IMG/VR virus record: IMGVR_UViG_3300028864_000016
Span: 124,001-188,000 of that record
Reading direction: 5' to 3' (one strand)
DNA length: 64,000 nucleotides
Positions 27,656-49,763 of this stretch are shown in pieces. The translations under genes were made by a program, and so were the position numbers. Position 1 is the stretch's first letter. Each line of letters opens with the position of its first letter. The notes beneath the pieces were generated by a model. The model was not told the DNA's origin. It ran no database searches and worked only from the letters and a program-made list of their open reading frames with translations.

Positions 27656-28660
27656 TTATAGTGATTCAAGTGCCAATAATACTTCCTCAGCTACTTTTTT
27701 ACTTGTTATACTATTAGGATTTGGATCATCTCCATTTTTACTCTTTACAGTAGTTGATACTTCTTGTCTCTTTCCACTATTAGCTAATTCTTTGCATTTT
27801 TCTAATATTTCTGATTTTAATTCATCTAATGTTTTTTCAGGAATTTTTGATTCTTCTTGAATTACTTCTTTTTCTTTGATGTCATCAACTTTAGCTTTTT
27901 CAATTTTTTTGCTAGGTTTAGGTTTAACATCTTCATTTAGCCCTTCGTTAGCCCATCTAATAATTCTCTTTCCATGGTCTTCTGTTAATTTAACAGCATT
28001 ATCATTTTCGAATATATGAGTATTATCCTTCATAGGTTCGGCAGTATTTGTTTTTTGGTCTATCATAAATGTTGCAGTAAATTCGTATTCAAAACCTTCC
28101 CTTTGTTTTGCTCCAACACCTACTTTTTCTACTTTTGTATTCTTTCCACCTTTACCACTATCTTCTTGAGTCATTACATATTGGTCTTTCCCTCTCATTG
28201 TGCAAATCATATGTACTTCACTTGTAGCTATTTTTTGAATAAACTTTTCATGTCTAGGAGTTACTTTACCCCAATCTTGATACTTACCACCTAACTTAGA
28301 TTGTATCTCAAGACATCCTCCTTTACCTTCCCATTCTGCTGATGATGAATCTACAATTACTATATCGTAACCTTCATCCATAGCATAATCAATTGCATCA
28401 ATAAACAATTCAGGTTCATAATTAGGTTCAAGGTCAATTATGTCATAATTAAATTCATTAGCGTAATATCTTCCTCTTTTACCTTCTGTATTAAGCAATA
28501 TTATTCTTGCTTTTTTACCTGTTCTTATTTCAATTTCTTCTGCCATACCAGTTGCTAATCTTAAAGAACTATAAGTTTTTCCTCCACCTGATGGTGCCAT
28601 TAAAGCTATCTTTGCATATATATTTTCTCTCTTTGCTTGGTTTATAACGAATTTTGCCAT
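27656..28660 (-). CDS. AAA_24/Sak4-like ATPase (ssDNA annealing or replication accessory)
   Basis: APSGGGKTYSS Walker A, LNTE, IVDSSSAEWEGKGG, CTMRGK, QREGFEYEF. Confidence 0.88.
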   Translation of the reverse strand: MAKFVINQAKRENIYAKIALMAPSGGGKTYSSLRLATGMAEEIEIRTGKKARIILLNTEGKRGRYYANEFNYDIIDLEPNYEPELFIDAIDYAMDEGYDIVIVDSSSAEWEGKGGCLEIQSKLGGKYQDWGKVTPRHEKFIQKIATSEVHMICTMRGKDQYVMTQEDSGKGGKNTKVEKVGVGAKQREGFEYEFTATFMIDQKTNTAEPMKDNTHIFENDNAVKLTEDHGKRIIRWANEGLNEDVKPKPSKKIEKAKVDDIKEKEVIQEESKIPEKTLDELKSEILEKCKELANSGKRQEVSTTVKSKNGDDPNPNSITSKKVAEEVLLALESL

Positions 28661-33038: not shown

Positions 33039-33596
33039 CTATTTATTCTCCTTTCCTGTGAGGTTAATTTCTTCATCCTTTCCATTTTTAAAAGCTTTAT
33101 CTGTTTTATCTGAAGTAACTACATAATCTTTTGCATCTATATCTTTTCTTCCTGTTATCATAGTCATAACTGGCTTCTGTTGAATATATGTATTATATTC
33201 TCTTATTATATCTGCAATTTGTTTTTGGTTATTATCAAATGTCTTCCTATTAGCTGAAATTTCTCTTTGAATTCCTGTATATACTTTAGTATCTAATTGA
33301 GGATTTTGTTCTTTAATTGCTTTAAACAATAAATTTTGGTCTTGATTTCTTCCCTCAATTAATCCAGTATAAACATCTTTAAATTGTTGTGCTTGTATAT
33401 CTGTTACTTGTGTCATTTCTTTTAATGATTTCCACATTGAATCATAATTACTTTGATTTGATACATATTGAGCCTTTATTCTTTCCTCCAATGATACTGC
33501 TGTATTTCTATGACTCCATAATACTCCTCCTGAAATTAATGCAATTAAAAAAATTGTTCCCAATGTCATTCCAAAACCTATTAATACTTTTTTCAC
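33039..33596 (-). CDS. LemA-like membrane-anchored coiled-coil protein
   Basis: N-terminal TM then RNTAVSLEERIKAQ..NQSNY, helical body ending YNTYIQQKP. Confidence 0.6.
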   Translation of the reverse strand: MKKVLIGFGMTLGTIFLIALISGGVLWSHRNTAVSLEERIKAQYVSNQSNYDSMWKSLKEMTQVTDIQAQQFKDVYTGLIEGRNQDQNLLFKAIKEQNPQLDTKVYTGIQREISANRKTFDNNQKQIADIIREYNTYIQQKPVMTMITGRKDIDAKDYVVTSDKTDKAFKNGKDEEINLTGKENK

Positions 33597-45670: not shown

Positions 45671-46072
45671 TTATTTATTACCTTCGTTAATAATATTCAT
45701 TATACCCTCTAATTGGTTCACCGTAAATCTACCATTATTACAACTATAACGTTCAAAATACGTATTTCTAATGTTTCTATATAATCCCTCAGCTTTTTCT
45801 TCTTCAATTATTTCTTCTTTATTTAAATAAAGCTGATAATTATAACTACAATCTGTTTTATCTCTATAATTATCTTCTTTGCTAAATTGGTATTCATAGA
45901 TTTCATTCCATTTTACAGTTATATACTTTCTACCAATTTTTGTAACTTCTCCATCGTAGCACCATTCGTTAATATTTTTTAAACTCATATCTTTATTTTT
46001 TGAATAGTAACTTCCATCTATAATTTTGACTATAACCTTTTGATCTACTTTTAAATCTAATTTTCTTGCCAT
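45671..46072 (-). CDS. SH3/beta-barrel-like hypothetical phage protein
   Basis: LKVDQKV..GEVTKIGRKYITV. Confidence 0.6.
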   Translation of the reverse strand: MARKLDLKVDQKVIVKIIDGSYYSKNKDMSLKNINEWCYDGEVTKIGRKYITVKWNEIYEYQFSKEDNYRDKTDCSYNYQLYLNKEEIIEEEKAEGLYRNIRNTYFERYSCNNGRFTVNQLEGIMNIINEGNK

Positions 46073-46623
46073 TTATTCACCCCATTATACTCTTCAAGCA
46101 TCTTTCTAACTTTAGTAATTTCTTCTTGACTATGAACTGTTCCGCCAGTATTATAATCTAGATACCATTGCAATACTTCTTTCTTAGTTTTTAGATTGTT
46201 AACATTAAATCTTATTGTTTCTCTTCTTAGAGTAGGTAATATGTCCTCAAACTCATTCCGTAAGTATCCAAATACTCTAAGTTCATTAGCTAAGAATTTT
46301 CTGATAGTAGTTAGTCTTTGTAATCCATCAACGCAAACCATAGGCATTTCATATTTACCATTTATATAATCTTCGCATGTACCATCAATAAAATAAGGAC
46401 AGTTGAAATATATTGTTCTTGCAGTCTTACCACCTCTTAGAAAGAACTCCATATATGCTATTTGTTGTTCTTCGCTCCACACACAACCTCTTTGAAAGTC
46501 TGGATTTAATTCTAAGCCATAATCTTCAAAATAATCCTTTAACGCTGACTCTAAATAGTTTAAAGATATACTAACTTCATATTCTCCATCTGGTGTAAAT
46601 TTAGGGATATCATTGATTTTCAT
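46057..46623 (-). CDS. Stand-alone DUF262 (ParB/Srx-fold) protein
   Basis: LNPDFQRGCVW..QQ, CVDGLQRLTTI. Confidence 0.85.
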   Translation of the reverse strand: MKINDIPKFTPDGEYEVSISLNYLESALKDYFEDYGLELNPDFQRGCVWSEEQQIAYMEFFLRGGKTARTIYFNCPYFIDGTCEDYINGKYEMPMVCVDGLQRLTTIRKFLANELRVFGYLRNEFEDILPTLRRETIRFNVNNLKTKKEVLQWYLDYNTGGTVHSQEEITKVRKMLEEYNGVNKWQEN

Positions 46624-46696
46624 TTAATTCCACTCCATTTCATTATTAATATTATACTAAACATCTATGTATCTGTCATTCCTTAACCCTAAATTA

Positions 46697-46725
46697 AGTA
46701 TAAATCTTCCAGTCTAATAAGTCAA
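46697..46725 (-). promoter_or_regulatory. Sigma-A type promoter for the DUF262 operon
   Basis: TTGACT-17-TATACT with upstream ATAAATTAATAGAAA box. Confidence 0.85.
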
Positions 46726-46756
46726 TACTATTTCTATTAATTTATTTAAATAATAT

Positions 46757-46792
46757 AAAAAGTTTCTAACAAATTTATTCTCTGCTAGAAAC
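46757..46792 (-). terminator. Intrinsic terminator right after the TnpB element end
   Basis: GTTTCTAGCAGA..TTTGTTAGAAAC stem followed by TTTTT. Confidence 0.75.
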
Positions 46793-46960
46793 CGTTACCT
46801 ATGATTTATATAACTTCCTAAATCATTGTTTAATTCCTTATTCAACGTGTCCTATTTTGCATTATCACTAATACTACTTTAGTTTGATATGACACTCCAA
46901 AGGCTTAACTTCGGGCATAACGAACCCTACACCTCAGCATTATCGTTTTAGTGTGATTTA
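46772..46960 (-). ncRNA. TnpB omegaRNA (right-end RNA) scaffold plus predicted guide
   Basis: GTGTAGGGTTCGTTATGCCCGAAGTTAAGCCTTTGGAGTG..GGACACGTTGAATAAGGAA..GTAACGG, resembling clostridial IS607/IStron right ends; guide would start at 46791. Confidence 0.65.
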
Positions 46961-48100
46961 TGCTGAATATCTACTTAGATTTATACTTGCATTATAATCT
47001 CTATCTATAACACAACCACATTCCTCACAGATATAAACTCTATCAGATAGCTTTAGTTCCTTTTTTATATGACCACACCCACTACAAGTCTTTGATGATG
47101 GATACCATTTATCAGCTTCAACAAATTCAATCCCATTAAACTCGCATTTATACTGCATTTGTCTTTTAAATTCATATAAACATTGTTCTGCAATAGCTTT
47201 TGATAAATGTTTATTTTTCATCATACCTTTAATGTCAAGTGTTTCCATAACAACTCTTGATGGTTTGGTTTTCACTATCATATTTGTTGCTTGGTGTAAA
47301 TGATTATTTCTTATATTTGTTAATTTTCTATAGACTAATTTTATTTGTTTTTCCAACTTAATCATATTATTAGTCTTATTTAATTGGTAACAATTTTCAC
47401 TCTCTTTCTTAATTTTATTATTTTCATATTTTCGATTAACTTGTTTTTGTAATCTTTTTAATTTCTTTTCTGTTTTCTTAACTTTTTTAGTTTTATTAAT
47501 ATTTTTGAATGTCATTCCATTGGAGCATATTGCTAAATCTTTGATTCCAAGGTCTATTCCTATTGATAAATCTTTATTCAATCCAACCTTAGTTTCATTG
47601 TGTTCAAACCCAAATGTTAGATACCAATATTTTCCGTCAAAATAACACCTTGGATTATTATATTTGGGCAAATTGGGAATGTTATAATTAGTTTTATACT
47701 TAACTTTTCCTATTTTTTCTAAATTTACTTTGTTATCTTGAAATTTTATAGCATCATATCTAACATAAAATGATTGTTTTGAGTTTTTCTTAGTTTTAAA
47801 TTTAGGATAATTAGATAATCCTTTGAAAAAATTTTTATATGCCGTATTTAAATCTTCAAATGCTTGTGATGTGACTTGAGCACTCACTTCTTTTATCCAT
47901 TGATAATTTATATCTTTCTTTAAAACATTATTAAATTCTTTTCTGATTATAGTTTTTGATGGATTTTGTCCTTGTTTGTAAGCATCTTCCCATTTTGCTC
48001 TTCCCCAGTTATAAGTAAATCTTGCTATACCACATGATTTAAACATTAATGTTTCTTGTTCTTTTGTTGGTTTTAATCTTACTTTTATTGACTTTATCAT
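46958..48100 (-). CDS. tnpB: TnpB RNA-guided endonuclease (IS200/605/607 family), catalytic triad intact
   Basis: KVRLKPTKEQ HTH, GIDLG (D), VMETL (E), YPSSKTCSGCG, CEECG, DRDYNAS (D). Confidence 0.96.
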   Translation of the reverse strand: MIKSIKVRLKPTKEQETLMFKSCGIARFTYNWGRAKWEDAYKQGQNPSKTIIRKEFNNVLKKDINYQWIKEVSAQVTSQAFEDLNTAYKNFFKGLSNYPKFKTKKNSKQSFYVRYDAIKFQDNKVNLEKIGKVKYKTNYNIPNLPKYNNPRCYFDGKYWYLTFGFEHNETKVGLNKDLSIGIDLGIKDLAICSNGMTFKNINKTKKVKKTEKKLKRLQKQVNRKYENNKIKKESENCYQLNKTNNMIKLEKQIKLVYRKLTNIRNNHLHQATNMIVKTKPSRVVMETLDIKGMMKNKHLSKAIAEQCLYEFKRQMQYKCEFNGIEFVEADKWYPSSKTCSGCGHIKKELKLSDRVYICEECGCVIDRDYNASINLSRYSA

Positions 48101-48124
48101 ATTTTCACCTCTCTTTCTAAATTA

Positions 48125-48153
48125 ATAATATCATAGTGTTATCACCTTGTCAA
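48125..48153 (-). promoter_or_regulatory. Sigma-A promoter of tnpB with candidate RHH operator
   Basis: TTGACA-17-TATTAT with extended TG; GTGATAA half-sites in the spacer and, inverted, at 48185-48191. Confidence 0.8.
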
Positions 48154-48193
48154 CATTTTAATTATATGCTATTATATTCTTGAGGTGATAATA

Positions 48194-48346
48194 ATGACTA
48201 TTTCTAAAGATAATACTAGAACACAATTGACTATTTCTAAAGAATTAAAACAACAATTAGAACAAATTGCTAAGGAACAAAATAGAAGTTTTAATAATTT
48301 AGTTATTACTATATTACAATCATATATAATTAACACTCAAAAATAG
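48194..48346 (+). CDS. 50-aa ribbon-helix-helix (CopG/Arc-like) regulator, divergent from tnpB; missing from the ORF track
   Basis: MTISKDNTRTQLTISKELKQQLEQIAKEQNRSFNNLVITILQSYIINTQK; GAGGTG RBS; the only plus-strand gene I can support. Confidence 0.85.
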   Translation: MTISKDNTRTQLTISKELKQQLEQIAKEQNRSFNNLVITILQSYIINTQK

Positions 48347-48364
48347 GAGTAATATATTTACTCC
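48346..48364 (+). terminator. Hairpin after the RHH gene
   Basis: GGAGTAA-TATAT-TTACTCC. Confidence 0.55.
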
Positions 48365-48412
48365 TATAATTTATTATATCCTGTTCAAATTAGAATTTTA
48401 TAGTAATATGTA

Positions 48413-48437
48413 ATGGCTACAGATAAACTATAGCCAT
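48413..48437 (-). terminator. Hairpin after ORF 48448-48963
   Basis: ATGGCTA..TAGCCAT inverted repeat. Confidence 0.55.
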
Positions 48438-48447
48438 ATTCGTAATT

Positions 48448-48963
48448 TTACTTTATAATTGGCTTTCCACATTTTTCACATTTAAGACCATAACTATATT
48501 CTTCTGGGTCAAGTTCAAGTATATAATCTTCCCCTGTATTTTCTCCAAATTTGTGAATTTCTTCTTCACTTAAAGTCATACAATCTGAACAAATAATTTC
48601 TAATCTGCCTTTTTCTTGTTCATCTACTTCATATTTTTTATAAGCTTTCCATTTCTTTTCTTTTAATATCTTTTGGTTTTCTAATGGTATGTTTATAAAA
48701 TTCAAATAATTTTTATATAGTATAGAATCTTCGCCATAGTATTCTTCATATATTTTCACTATCTCATCTTGTGTTTTACCATCATAGTATTTGTGTATTC
48801 CTTCAGTAGTATTTAGTTCTTTATTTTCTTTTTCAGTATAACCACCAACACTTAAATCTCCTATGTTTTCAATGTCATATTCTATACATTTATTAAGCAT
48901 CAATTTAAAATAACTGTCTTTTCCTTCTTTTATTTCTTTTCCTGTTAATATCATATTATACAC
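48448..48963 (-). CDS. Hypothetical protein with C-terminal zinc motif
   Basis: CSDC and CEKCG. Confidence 0.65.
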   Translation of the reverse strand: MYNMILTGKEIKEGKDSYFKLMLNKCIEYDIENIGDLSVGGYTEKENKELNTTEGIHKYYDGKTQDEIVKIYEEYYGEDSILYKNYLNFINIPLENQKILKEKKWKAYKKYEVDEQEKGRLEIICSDCMTLSEEEIHKFGENTGEDYILELDPEEYSYGLKCEKCGKPIIK

Positions 48964-49034
48964 TTCCTTTTATTAATTTGTTTTTATATGTATAATTATA
49001 TATGTATTACTTTAAATAGTCAACGGCATTTTAA

Positions 49035-49763
49035 TTATTTTAATTCATTAATCGCTATGTCATAATATTCTTGTTCCTTTTCAAACCCTATGTAGTTTCT
49101 ATTTAATTCTTTACATGCAATAGCGGTAGTTCCACCGCCTATAAACGGATCAAGAATAATATCACACTCGTTTGAATTTAATTCTATTAATCCTTTTATG
49201 TATTCAATGGGTTTTTGAGTTGGATGTCTTTTATCTTTCCCTCTAGGTGGATTAAATTTTCTGTTCTTTGAATAATAATCTTTTTTATTTGGACATGTAT
49301 CTATGTCTAATAAATTTAATGCAGTTCCATTATCATATATTCTAACTATGTATTCTAAATTTTGACTAAATCTATTTCTATTAAGTATGCTCAATGGTTT
49401 TTCCCAAGTGAGGATTGTCCACTTTTTCTTATTAGTTAATGCCCAGTTTAGATAATAAGGTATTAACGTATCATTAGTAAATATGTAACAATTTAATTTA
49501 ATCATTATTCTTTTAAACTCATTCATCATATTATTTATTTCATTTCCTCCAAAAGAACTCATATCTTTCATCATAGGGCTATCAAAGTTGTACATAGAAC
49601 TATTAGCTATTTTTGATTTTCCTTCTGTACCATGTGTCTTTCCACCACCTTTATTGTGAAGATATGGAGGGTCTGTTATTACTAATTTAATACTTTTATC
49701 TGGAATAGCCCTTAATCCATCCTCAGAAAAGCAATCTACATTTTTTATGTAATTATAATCCAT
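49035..49763 (-). CDS. N6-adenine/N4-cytosine DNA methyltransferase (beta class)
   Basis: ITDPPY, HPTQKP, ILDPFIGGGTT, YIGFE. Confidence 0.93.
   Translation of the reverse strand: MDYNYIKNVDCFSEDGLRAIPDKSIKLVITDPPYLHNKGGGKTHGTEGKSKIANSSMYNFDSPMMKDMSSFGGNEINNMMNEFKRIMIKLNCYIFTNDTLIPYYLNWALTNKKKWTILTWEKPLSILNRNRFSQNLEYIVRIYDNGTALNLLDIDTCPNKKDYYSKNRKFNPPRGKDKRHPTQKPIEYIKGLIELNSNECDIILDPFIGGGTTAIACKELNRNYIGFEKEQEYYDIAINELK

Follow-up and report, generated by a model that had tools for sequence, protein, structure and literature searches.

A phage-borne arc–tnpB cassette, probably a non-autonomous IS607-family element of the Clostridium botulinum IStron lineage

Results

Organization of the cassette

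The DNA analysed here is a 64-kb window (bases 124001–188000) of the 218,173-bp IMG/VR record IMGVR_UViG_3300028864_000016, a phage genome of 25.8% GC that is estimated to be 88% complete and has near-identical contigs in at least 14 peat metagenome runs. All positions refer to the window unless the record is named. An intergenic region of the phage, just upstream of a phage terminator, contains a cassette of ~1.6 kb (46792 to ~48380–48392) that retains a left-end tip, an arc-like gene for a small ribbon-helix-helix (RHH) protein, a bidirectional promoter/operator region, and tnpB followed by a RAGATH-18 omegaRNA extending to a terminal ...AACGG (Table 1). The cassette is very probably, as judged from these modules and their relatives, a non-autonomous insertion element of the IS607 family that belongs to the IStron lineage of Clostridium botulinum, has lost tnpA and the group I intron and has kept an Arc-like repressor. 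All parts of the transposase-free TnpB element noted in a preliminary description of this DNA, namely an intact nuclease, an omegaRNA and a divergent RHH gene, were recovered in our analysis.

Table 1 Features of the arc–tnpB cassette and its right flank (window coordinates).
Feature	Position	Strand	Description	Basis
Flanking intrinsic-terminator-like hairpin and T-run	46761..46793	-	13-pair stem; outside the element; overlaps the guide template	
Predicted guide template	46772..46791	-	20 nt directly 3' of the right end, TTTCTAGCAGAGAATAAATT on the minus strand	Position of the boundary
Right end with 3' part of omegaRNA scaffold	46792..46957	-	RAGATH-18 core 46834–46903; ends ...GGTAACGG (46799–46792), last base 46792	
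tnpB	46958..48100	-	380 aa, apparent RNA-guided RuvC nuclease, D-E-D and two CxxC pairs	Pfam/NCBIfam, structure alignment, motifs
Bidirectional promoter/operator region	48101..48193		93 bp; P_tnpB 48153–48125 minus, P_arc 48147–48175 plus	
arc-like RHH gene	48194..48346	+	50 aa; holds 16-bp direct repeat 48195–48210, 48228–48243	Profiles, homologues
Likely arc terminator	48343..48367		Perfect 10-bp hairpin over the arc stop codon; inside the element	
Probable left-end tip	48368..48392	-	Minus strand TAATTTGAACAGGATATAATAAATT, homologous to family tip TAACTAACAGTTACAAATAAGTT; exact boundary uncertain	

The product of tnpB matched the Pfam families HTH_OrfB_IS605, OrfB_IS605 and Cas12f1-like_TNB, scored 302 bits against NCBIfam guided_TnpB, and aligned end to end with solved TnpB structures (8iaz, 248 bits; ISDra2 TnpB 8exa, 124 bits). 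Profiles, motifs and structure alignment together revealed the features of the class: a split RuvC domain with the D-E-D residues (IDLG at 182, METLD at 285 and DRDYN at 366; residues 182–184, 285–287 and 366–368), a zinc ribbon (TNB) with two CxxC pairs (at 339 and 358), and an N-terminal HTH/WED region. By these sequence features the protein is an apparently intact RNA-guided RuvC nuclease, as first described. A reading of it as a TldR, a nuclease-dead regulator derived from TnpB, was rejected because the D-E-D residues are intact.

The divergently transcribed gene encodes a protein whose best Pfam match was RHH_5 (25.9 bits, with a cut-off of 26.0). In a large protein collection 339 homologues were found, many of them previously annotated with PF07878, and a profile built from these homologues matched RHH proteins of the PDB weakly (E 0.03 for the best, the RHH antitoxin EndoAI, and 0.73). 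It shares 35 of 49 residues with the product of the arc open reading frame (ORF) in an element of a C. botulinum plasmid. Its size and predicted fold are those of an Arc-like RHH protein, to which class we assign it; the initial reading had likewise been of an RHH gene. The gene also contains the direct repeat reported earlier, ACnATTTCTAAAGA, whose two copies are exact, lie 33 bp apart and encode the peptides TISKD and TISKE, the second copy beginning with TTG. This repeat is kept at the DNA level throughout the family, and one relative (L204) carries the same T-to-A change in both copies; it might represent an additional DNA or RNA site, or an old duplication of 11 codons.

The intergenic region between the two genes contains two opposed promoter-like sites arranged back to back, with overlapping −35 hexamers. 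P_tnpB, the near-consensus promoter seen in the preliminary description, consists of TTGACA (48153–48148), a 17-nt spacer and TATTAT (48130–48125) with a TG extension and matches the consensus at 11 of 12 positions; P_arc (TTGTCA-17-TATTAT) matches at 10 of 12. An operator-like block, CATAGTGnTAnCACCTTGTCAAC at 48132–48154, is invariant in six elements with different partner nuclease genes and is present also in the C. botulinum element. Inverted copies of GGTGATAA, likewise correctly identified before, are located at 48139–48146 (minus) and 48184–48191 (plus), the latter covering the ribosome-binding site of arc. This octamer occurs only six times in the 64 kb, versus 2.7 expected, and two of the six lie within 53 bp.

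Right end, omegaRNA and predicted guide

The omegaRNA-like right end of the preliminary description corresponds to a full-length match to Rfam RAGATH-18 (RF03064) on the minus strand, with 73.5 bits against a gathering score of 44.9 (E 3e-14). The same RNA was found 3' of tnpB in 14 of 14 relatives tested and in the C. botulinum element, and it is the omegaRNA core of the TnpB group to which the window element belongs. Alignment of the right ends of 18 relatives, of the closest relative (L215), of 21 autonomous relatives and of copy pairs within single genomes showed a consensus ...GCAACGG followed by unrelated flanks, with similarity stopping at this point in every set. A related 248-kb phage contig (L216), which has only the right flank in common with the window locus, is 89% identical to 46618–46792 and diverges at exactly 46792. 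Since the family alignment and this independent break in homology fall on the same base, the right end is placed at 46792, precisely where it had been put originally.

The 20 nt beyond this end would serve as the guide template, and no second site with two or fewer mismatches to the predicted guide was found within the 218-kb phage genome. The hairpin that overlaps the template also occurs in L216, which is free of the element; from its sequence it would stop the tnpB–omegaRNA transcript ~30 nt beyond the right end. Terminators had been reported on both sides of the cassette. Both hairpins are indeed present, but the one at arc is inside the element and the other is the very flank that templates the guide. 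Next to this flank, a motif of ~40 nt (46719–46761) recurs about ten times in the phage genome (in record coordinates 67879–67917, 182676–182716, 155200–155255, 187431–187469, 33294–33323, 129894–129925 and others); it is probably a repeated intergenic terminator–promoter module, because a terminator T-run is joined in it to promoter-like hexamers.

Left end and target-adjacent motif

The left boundary can be drawn at 48379/48380 if GG is the crossover core, at ~48392 by homology, or possibly as far out as ~48403. Copies of relatives at different sites show GAGG and then TAACTAACAGTTAC... at the left end. In the element of the C. botulinum plasmid the left flank is fixed by the reading frame of a split histidine-kinase gene and reads ...AATGAGG/TAACTAACAG, and the window sequence TAATTTGAACAGGATATAATAAATT aligns with the tip of that element.

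The preliminary description had proposed GAACAGG/TTTCTAG as the candidate junction of the uninterrupted site. Its right side is exact, whereas the left side is doubtful, and with it the candidate empty site and target-adjacent motif (TAM), because in relatives the sequence aligned with GAACAGG is an internal motif of the left end (TAACTAACAG); the GG at 48380–48381 falls within this aligned motif. By homology the flank ends ...AAATTC, and the alignment suggests that AACAG is probably internal, with a tip near 48392 and a flank ...TATAAAATTC that has no GG. A boundary with GAACAGG in the flank would, on the other hand, supply the GG crossover core that IS607 transposases require, and we put the chances that the originally proposed left boundary is correct at about even. 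Another candidate, the use of a relative (L225) to fix the left end at GG/CATAAAAC, was rejected, as the stretch concerned is internal IStron sequence. The local donor joint may not be a substrate of TnpB, because the left flank assigned by homology is without GG or GAGG.

Family placement

Comparison of the arrangement upstream of tnpB at 146 related loci revealed four types: an overlapping gene for a ~208-aa MerR and Resolvase protein, that is, the IS607 serine transposase (21 relatives); a group I intron, making the element an IStron (L076, 85.8 bits); a divergent RHH gene of 46–59 aa matching Pfam RHH_3 or RHH_5; and nothing recognizable. Copies with an RHH gene that lie at unrelated sites have arc, tnpB and omegaRNA in common and not their flanks, and arc therefore belongs to the mobile unit, as the preliminary description had assumed in treating it as the cassette's own gene. 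In a maximum-likelihood tree, the window TnpB grouped with that of L215 and close to that of L225, in a clade with 99% support that is otherwise of the IStron type. The tnpA and RHH_3 labels were scattered over this tree, which suggests frequent exchange of the upstream module.

The right end carries the IS607 feature ...CGG with a GG core, and tnpA-bearing chromosomal relatives end in ...GCAACGG. Searches of the entire 218,173-bp record revealed neither a Y1 transposase (PF01797) nor a serine recombinase (PF00239), extending the earlier remark that the window has no tnpA. With no PF00239 match in the element or the 218-kb record, it can be at most a non-autonomous member of IS607. An IStron in the strict sense was rejected: there was no Intron_gpI match at 46000–49000 (E ≤1), and only 46 nt separate arc from the left-end tip.

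Among the closest known systems is the IS607-family IStron-type element at 13.0–15.0 kb of plasmid p1 of C. botulinum BKT015925 (NC_015417.1), of the lineage studied by Zedaveinyte et al. (see Discussion). It is collinear with the window element from arc to omegaRNA at 73.5% nucleotide identity over 1.5 kb. Its modules follow in the same order, from the left-end tip through a reversed arc, a bidirectional promoter containing that operator block and tnpB to RAGATH-18 and a terminal ...AACGG, and its TnpB is 68.6% identical, with the Arc proteins agreeing at the 35 of 49 positions given above. The two differ in the distance from left end to arc, which is ~450 nt in the plasmid element against 46 nt in the window; the longer stretch corresponds collinearly to the group I intron that a sister element carries. 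They differ also in location, since the plasmid element interrupts the histidine-kinase gene at ...GAGG, whereas the window element lies between genes of a phage and its left flank is non-canonical. In the plasmid annotation, the arc gene of this IStron-type element is a hypothetical protein of 49 aa (WP_013720776.1; L228, NC_015417.1 13449–13598), and the split sensor histidine-kinase gene is entered as two separate coding sequences.

Autonomous IS607 elements (for example L087 of C. carboxidivorans P7 and L026 of phage c-st) have TnpB proteins 54–62% identical to that of the window, RAGATH-18 and a similar left-end tip. Chromosomal ones such as L087 end in ...GCAACGG as does the window family, and the phage c-st element ends in ...ATCGG. 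These elements carry tnpA, overlapping tnpB, and no arc, whereas in the window element arc is present and tnpA absent. We also considered that an arc module of IS605 type might here be joined to a TnpB of IS607 type, but such a chimera was rejected, because arc and operator are the same in the C. botulinum IS607-type element. An incongruence of the phylogenies remains, with the window Arc 90–96% identical to Arc of other lineages and its TnpB at most 73% identical to any.

Presence and mobility in peat samples

No second copy of the element exists in the 218,173-bp record. An exact pattern across the proposed junction, allowing a gap of 0–8 nt, had no match among the contigs of IMG/VR or of JGI metagenomes. 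A joint skipping the element was also not seen in the Logan contigs of four peat DNA runs; such contigs drop rare variants and are not evidence of absence. The empty-site allele that the preliminary description had proposed to look for was accordingly not found in viral, metagenome or four-run assembled contigs. Synteny did not supply an element-free close relative either: homologues of the ParB/GmrSD_N-like neighbour occurred in 32 viral contigs, none with the same neighbourhood, and a 171-aa neighbour protein yielded no relatives. Signs of mobility, in the form of multiple sites, were seen for the family as a whole and not for the window element. Four RNA-labelled runs contained only conserved pieces of relatives; two of these runs are probably DNA, and all four are uninformative about transcription.

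Module exchange and insertion preference among relatives

The arc–operator module (48104–48327) is 84–89% identical in nucleotide sequence to modules paired with divergent TnpB-like proteins of 494–510 aa, whereas a module that accompanies an IS605-type TnpB in phage-like contigs is 81% identical to it. The window TnpB itself is 68–73% identical to its nearest relatives. The high identity of the regulator module beside the much lower identity of TnpB suggests that this module is exchanged between nuclease lineages.

The 494–510-aa partners occur in L198–L203 and L208–L213 (e.g., L200:342–1874 and L209:361–1845) with an Arc 90–96% identical to that of the window and the same operator region. 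They scored 70–87 bits with the TnpB family model, below its cut-off of 100. Neither a zinc-ribbon (TNB) domain match, nor a sequence relative in the PDB, nor RAGATH-18 was seen for them, and the regulator may here control an unusual lineage of large TnpB proteins. The IS605-type arc–tnpB element (L204–L207, from a Clostridium sp. assembly and gut and other metagenomes) encodes a TnpB of 368 aa, is without RAGATH-18 and has a left-end hairpin CCCAyGACTAAAGTCAyGGG. It lies in phage-like contigs, with small ORFs on one side and an ERCC4 nuclease/DNA polymerase III alpha gene pair on the other. L215 adjoins a dUTPase gene and an NrdD gene interrupted by an HNH endonuclease, and Arc–TnpB elements recur in phage replication modules.

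Variant contigs from two peat assemblies (L197:1–340 and L214:1530–1878) share the left flank, arc and tnpB of the window element at 98.7% identity, and from the last tnpB codons on they have a different right end (74% identity), 7 nt before the start of a TsaE-like ATPase gene. They are the result either of recombination of the phage copy with another family member or of chimeric assembly.

Analysis of the right flanks of 78 relatives with distinct right-end flanks (L010–L155) revealed the start codon of an ORF of at least 60 aa within 25 nt in 61, at a distance of 2–23 nt, mostly 5–8 nt with a mode of 7 nt. The left flanks of relatives end in GAGG or GGGG and resemble a Shine-Dalgarno sequence. 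Taken together, these start codons and left flanks indicate that the family tends to insert between ribosome-binding site and start codon. The window copy is atypical and is not placed directly upstream of a start codon.

Neighbouring genes

Adjacent to the element (45671–46623 and 49035–49763) are genes for a ParB/GmrSD_N-like protein (188 aa), a phage ProQ-C-like protein (133 aa) and an N6/N4 DNA methyltransferase, and a second methyltransferase gene lies further along. The phage had been described as encoding its own recombination proteins. Among the recombination genes searched for, this came down to one AAA_24/Sak4-like match at 28010–28615, ~18 kb from the element; searches for RecA, RecT, ERF and PDDEXK_1 found none.

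Discussion

The window element is a phage-borne example of a type that has already been described, and the combination of Arc and TnpB is not new. An Arc-like RHH ORF was reported in IStrons and other TnpB elements in 2023 (Zedaveinyte et al., bioRxiv 10.1101/2023.11.20.567912). The same study of the IS607-family IStron of C. botulinum showed that TnpA requires a GG core, that the TAM of TnpB equals the target of TnpA, that the omegaRNA scaffold ends in ...CGG, and that cutting of the donor joint by TnpB promotes retention and homing. Chromatin immunoprecipitation sequencing (ChIP-seq), reporters and mutagenesis have since shown that Arc represses the tnpB promoter and that it binds motifs of opposite orientation located over the divergent promoters, in a set that includes elements of arc and tnpB alone (Moon, Zedaveinyte, Wiegand, Sternberg, October 2026, bioRxiv 10.64898/2026.09.24.754181). 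The window element resembles the Arc elements of that work in its small internal RHH gene divergent from tnpB, in its two opposed intergenic promoters and in the oppositely oriented repeats over −35 and −10, a likeness of described arrangement. The main models there are autonomous IS605 elements with a Y1 TnpA, whereas the window element is of the IS607 type and phage-borne. The suggestion in the preliminary description that the RHH protein regulates its own expression agrees with these experiments on Arc in IS605-family elements and is thus an already published model.

Following this published work on relatives, we infer a working in which Arc dimers would bind the conserved GTGnTAnCAC/GGTGATAA sites over the shared −35 region and the arc ribosome-binding site and so limit the expression of both genes. 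Processing of the tnpB transcript would yield an omegaRNA whose guide is the 16–20 nt of phage flank from 46791 downward, and the TnpB–omegaRNA complex would cut sites that are free of the element, or from which it has been excised, provided that a suitable TAM precedes this flank. If an element-bearing copy then serves in repair, the element would be restored or spread, and movement to a new site would require a TnpA serine recombinase in trans, for example from an autonomous relative in the host. What the window contributes by direct observation is the parts, their order, their intactness and their conservation.

Several points weigh against this reading of the cassette and its working. The RHH score is 0.1 bit below the Pfam gathering threshold, and the left flank assigned by homology lacks the GG/GAGG motif of relatives. 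The element occupies an identical site in all contigs, from at least 10 samples, and no excision joint or empty allele was found in the viral, metagenome and four-run contigs. The guide region folds into a terminator stem, a possible hindrance to targeting. Finally, the element is known here from its sequence, and its activity is a prediction.

Some of these points also fit the idea that the element is a stranded relic, fixed and immobile, in which Arc silences a nuclease that has no cleavable donor joint, so that the cassette would be carried along neutrally or be undergoing decay or exaptation. The phage has one copy at one site in every contig of the at least 10 samples and neither type of TnpA, the left flank by homology is ...AAATTC and not the GAGG of relatives, and the insertion site departs from that of the 61 of 78 relatives lying 2–23 nt upstream of a start codon. 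However, the ORFs, catalytic residues, omegaRNA core, both ends and both promoters are all intact, the left-end tip was retained despite loss of the intron, and the alternative boundary gives a CAGG flank containing the GG core. On balance we regard a relic as rather unlikely.

An active role between phages, by which TnpB–omegaRNA cuts element-free related phages during co-infection and the element is copied in or the competitor damaged, seems to us improbable, although there is a candidate partner. A related phage (L216, L220) is present in the same sample as L194, the contig of the window phage, and was ~20-fold deeper in run X11. At L216:3528–3720 and L220:3482–3663 it has the homologous terminator without the element, with AGAAG followed by a 19/20 match to the predicted guide. 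RHH-bearing TnpB elements were found at 18 of 66 viral against 2 of 80 genome loci, many of the viral ones being near-duplicates, and the AAA_24/Sak4-like recombinase is available in the phage. Yet the abundant related phage has not gained the element, its TAM position reads AG and not GG, and a shared host of both phages is an assumption. Homology exists on one side only of the would-be break, and recombinational copy-in is therefore not expected; for this reason cutting would harm the rival rather than convert it. Homing or exclusion of competitors by the window element, as first envisaged, is thus an extrapolation from known TnpB biology. For phage-borne Arc–TnpB cassettes in general, a part in competition between co-infecting phages, through exclusion or homing with Arc timing the nuclease, has in our estimate only a slender chance of being right.

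A toxin–antitoxin-like pair, in which the RHH protein blocks TnpB by direct binding, a mechanism proposed for archaeal RHH/MazE–TnpB (Altae-Tran et al., PNAS 2023, PMC10691335), would draw on the same small RHH gene beside tnpB, on the frequency of RHH proteins among antitoxins and on the EndoAI profile match (E 0.03), but we rejected it as highly improbable, since the archaeal genes are co-directional and immobile with a rearranged catalytic site, whereas those of the window are divergent and not an operon, the TnpB catalytic site is canonical, the family is mobile, and published Arc data show action on DNA.

The most probable identity of the cassette thus remains a non-autonomous IS607-family element of the IStron lineage, and the gain from it is modest: one well-preserved phage-borne example is added to a class already under experiment. 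It offers a natural unit of ~1.6 kb from an uncultured peat phage in which repressor, operator, nuclease and guide RNA are cleanly delimited parts. Movement of the arc–operator cassette between nuclease lineages could matter, and the preference of the wider family for insertion between ribosome-binding site and start codon is striking. An element-bearing phage and an element-free relative with a near-perfect protospacer in the same samples constitute a system for studying the role of TnpB in phage competition, and such a role, if real, would be in keeping with the apparently greater frequency of Arc-bearing TnpB elements in viral contigs.

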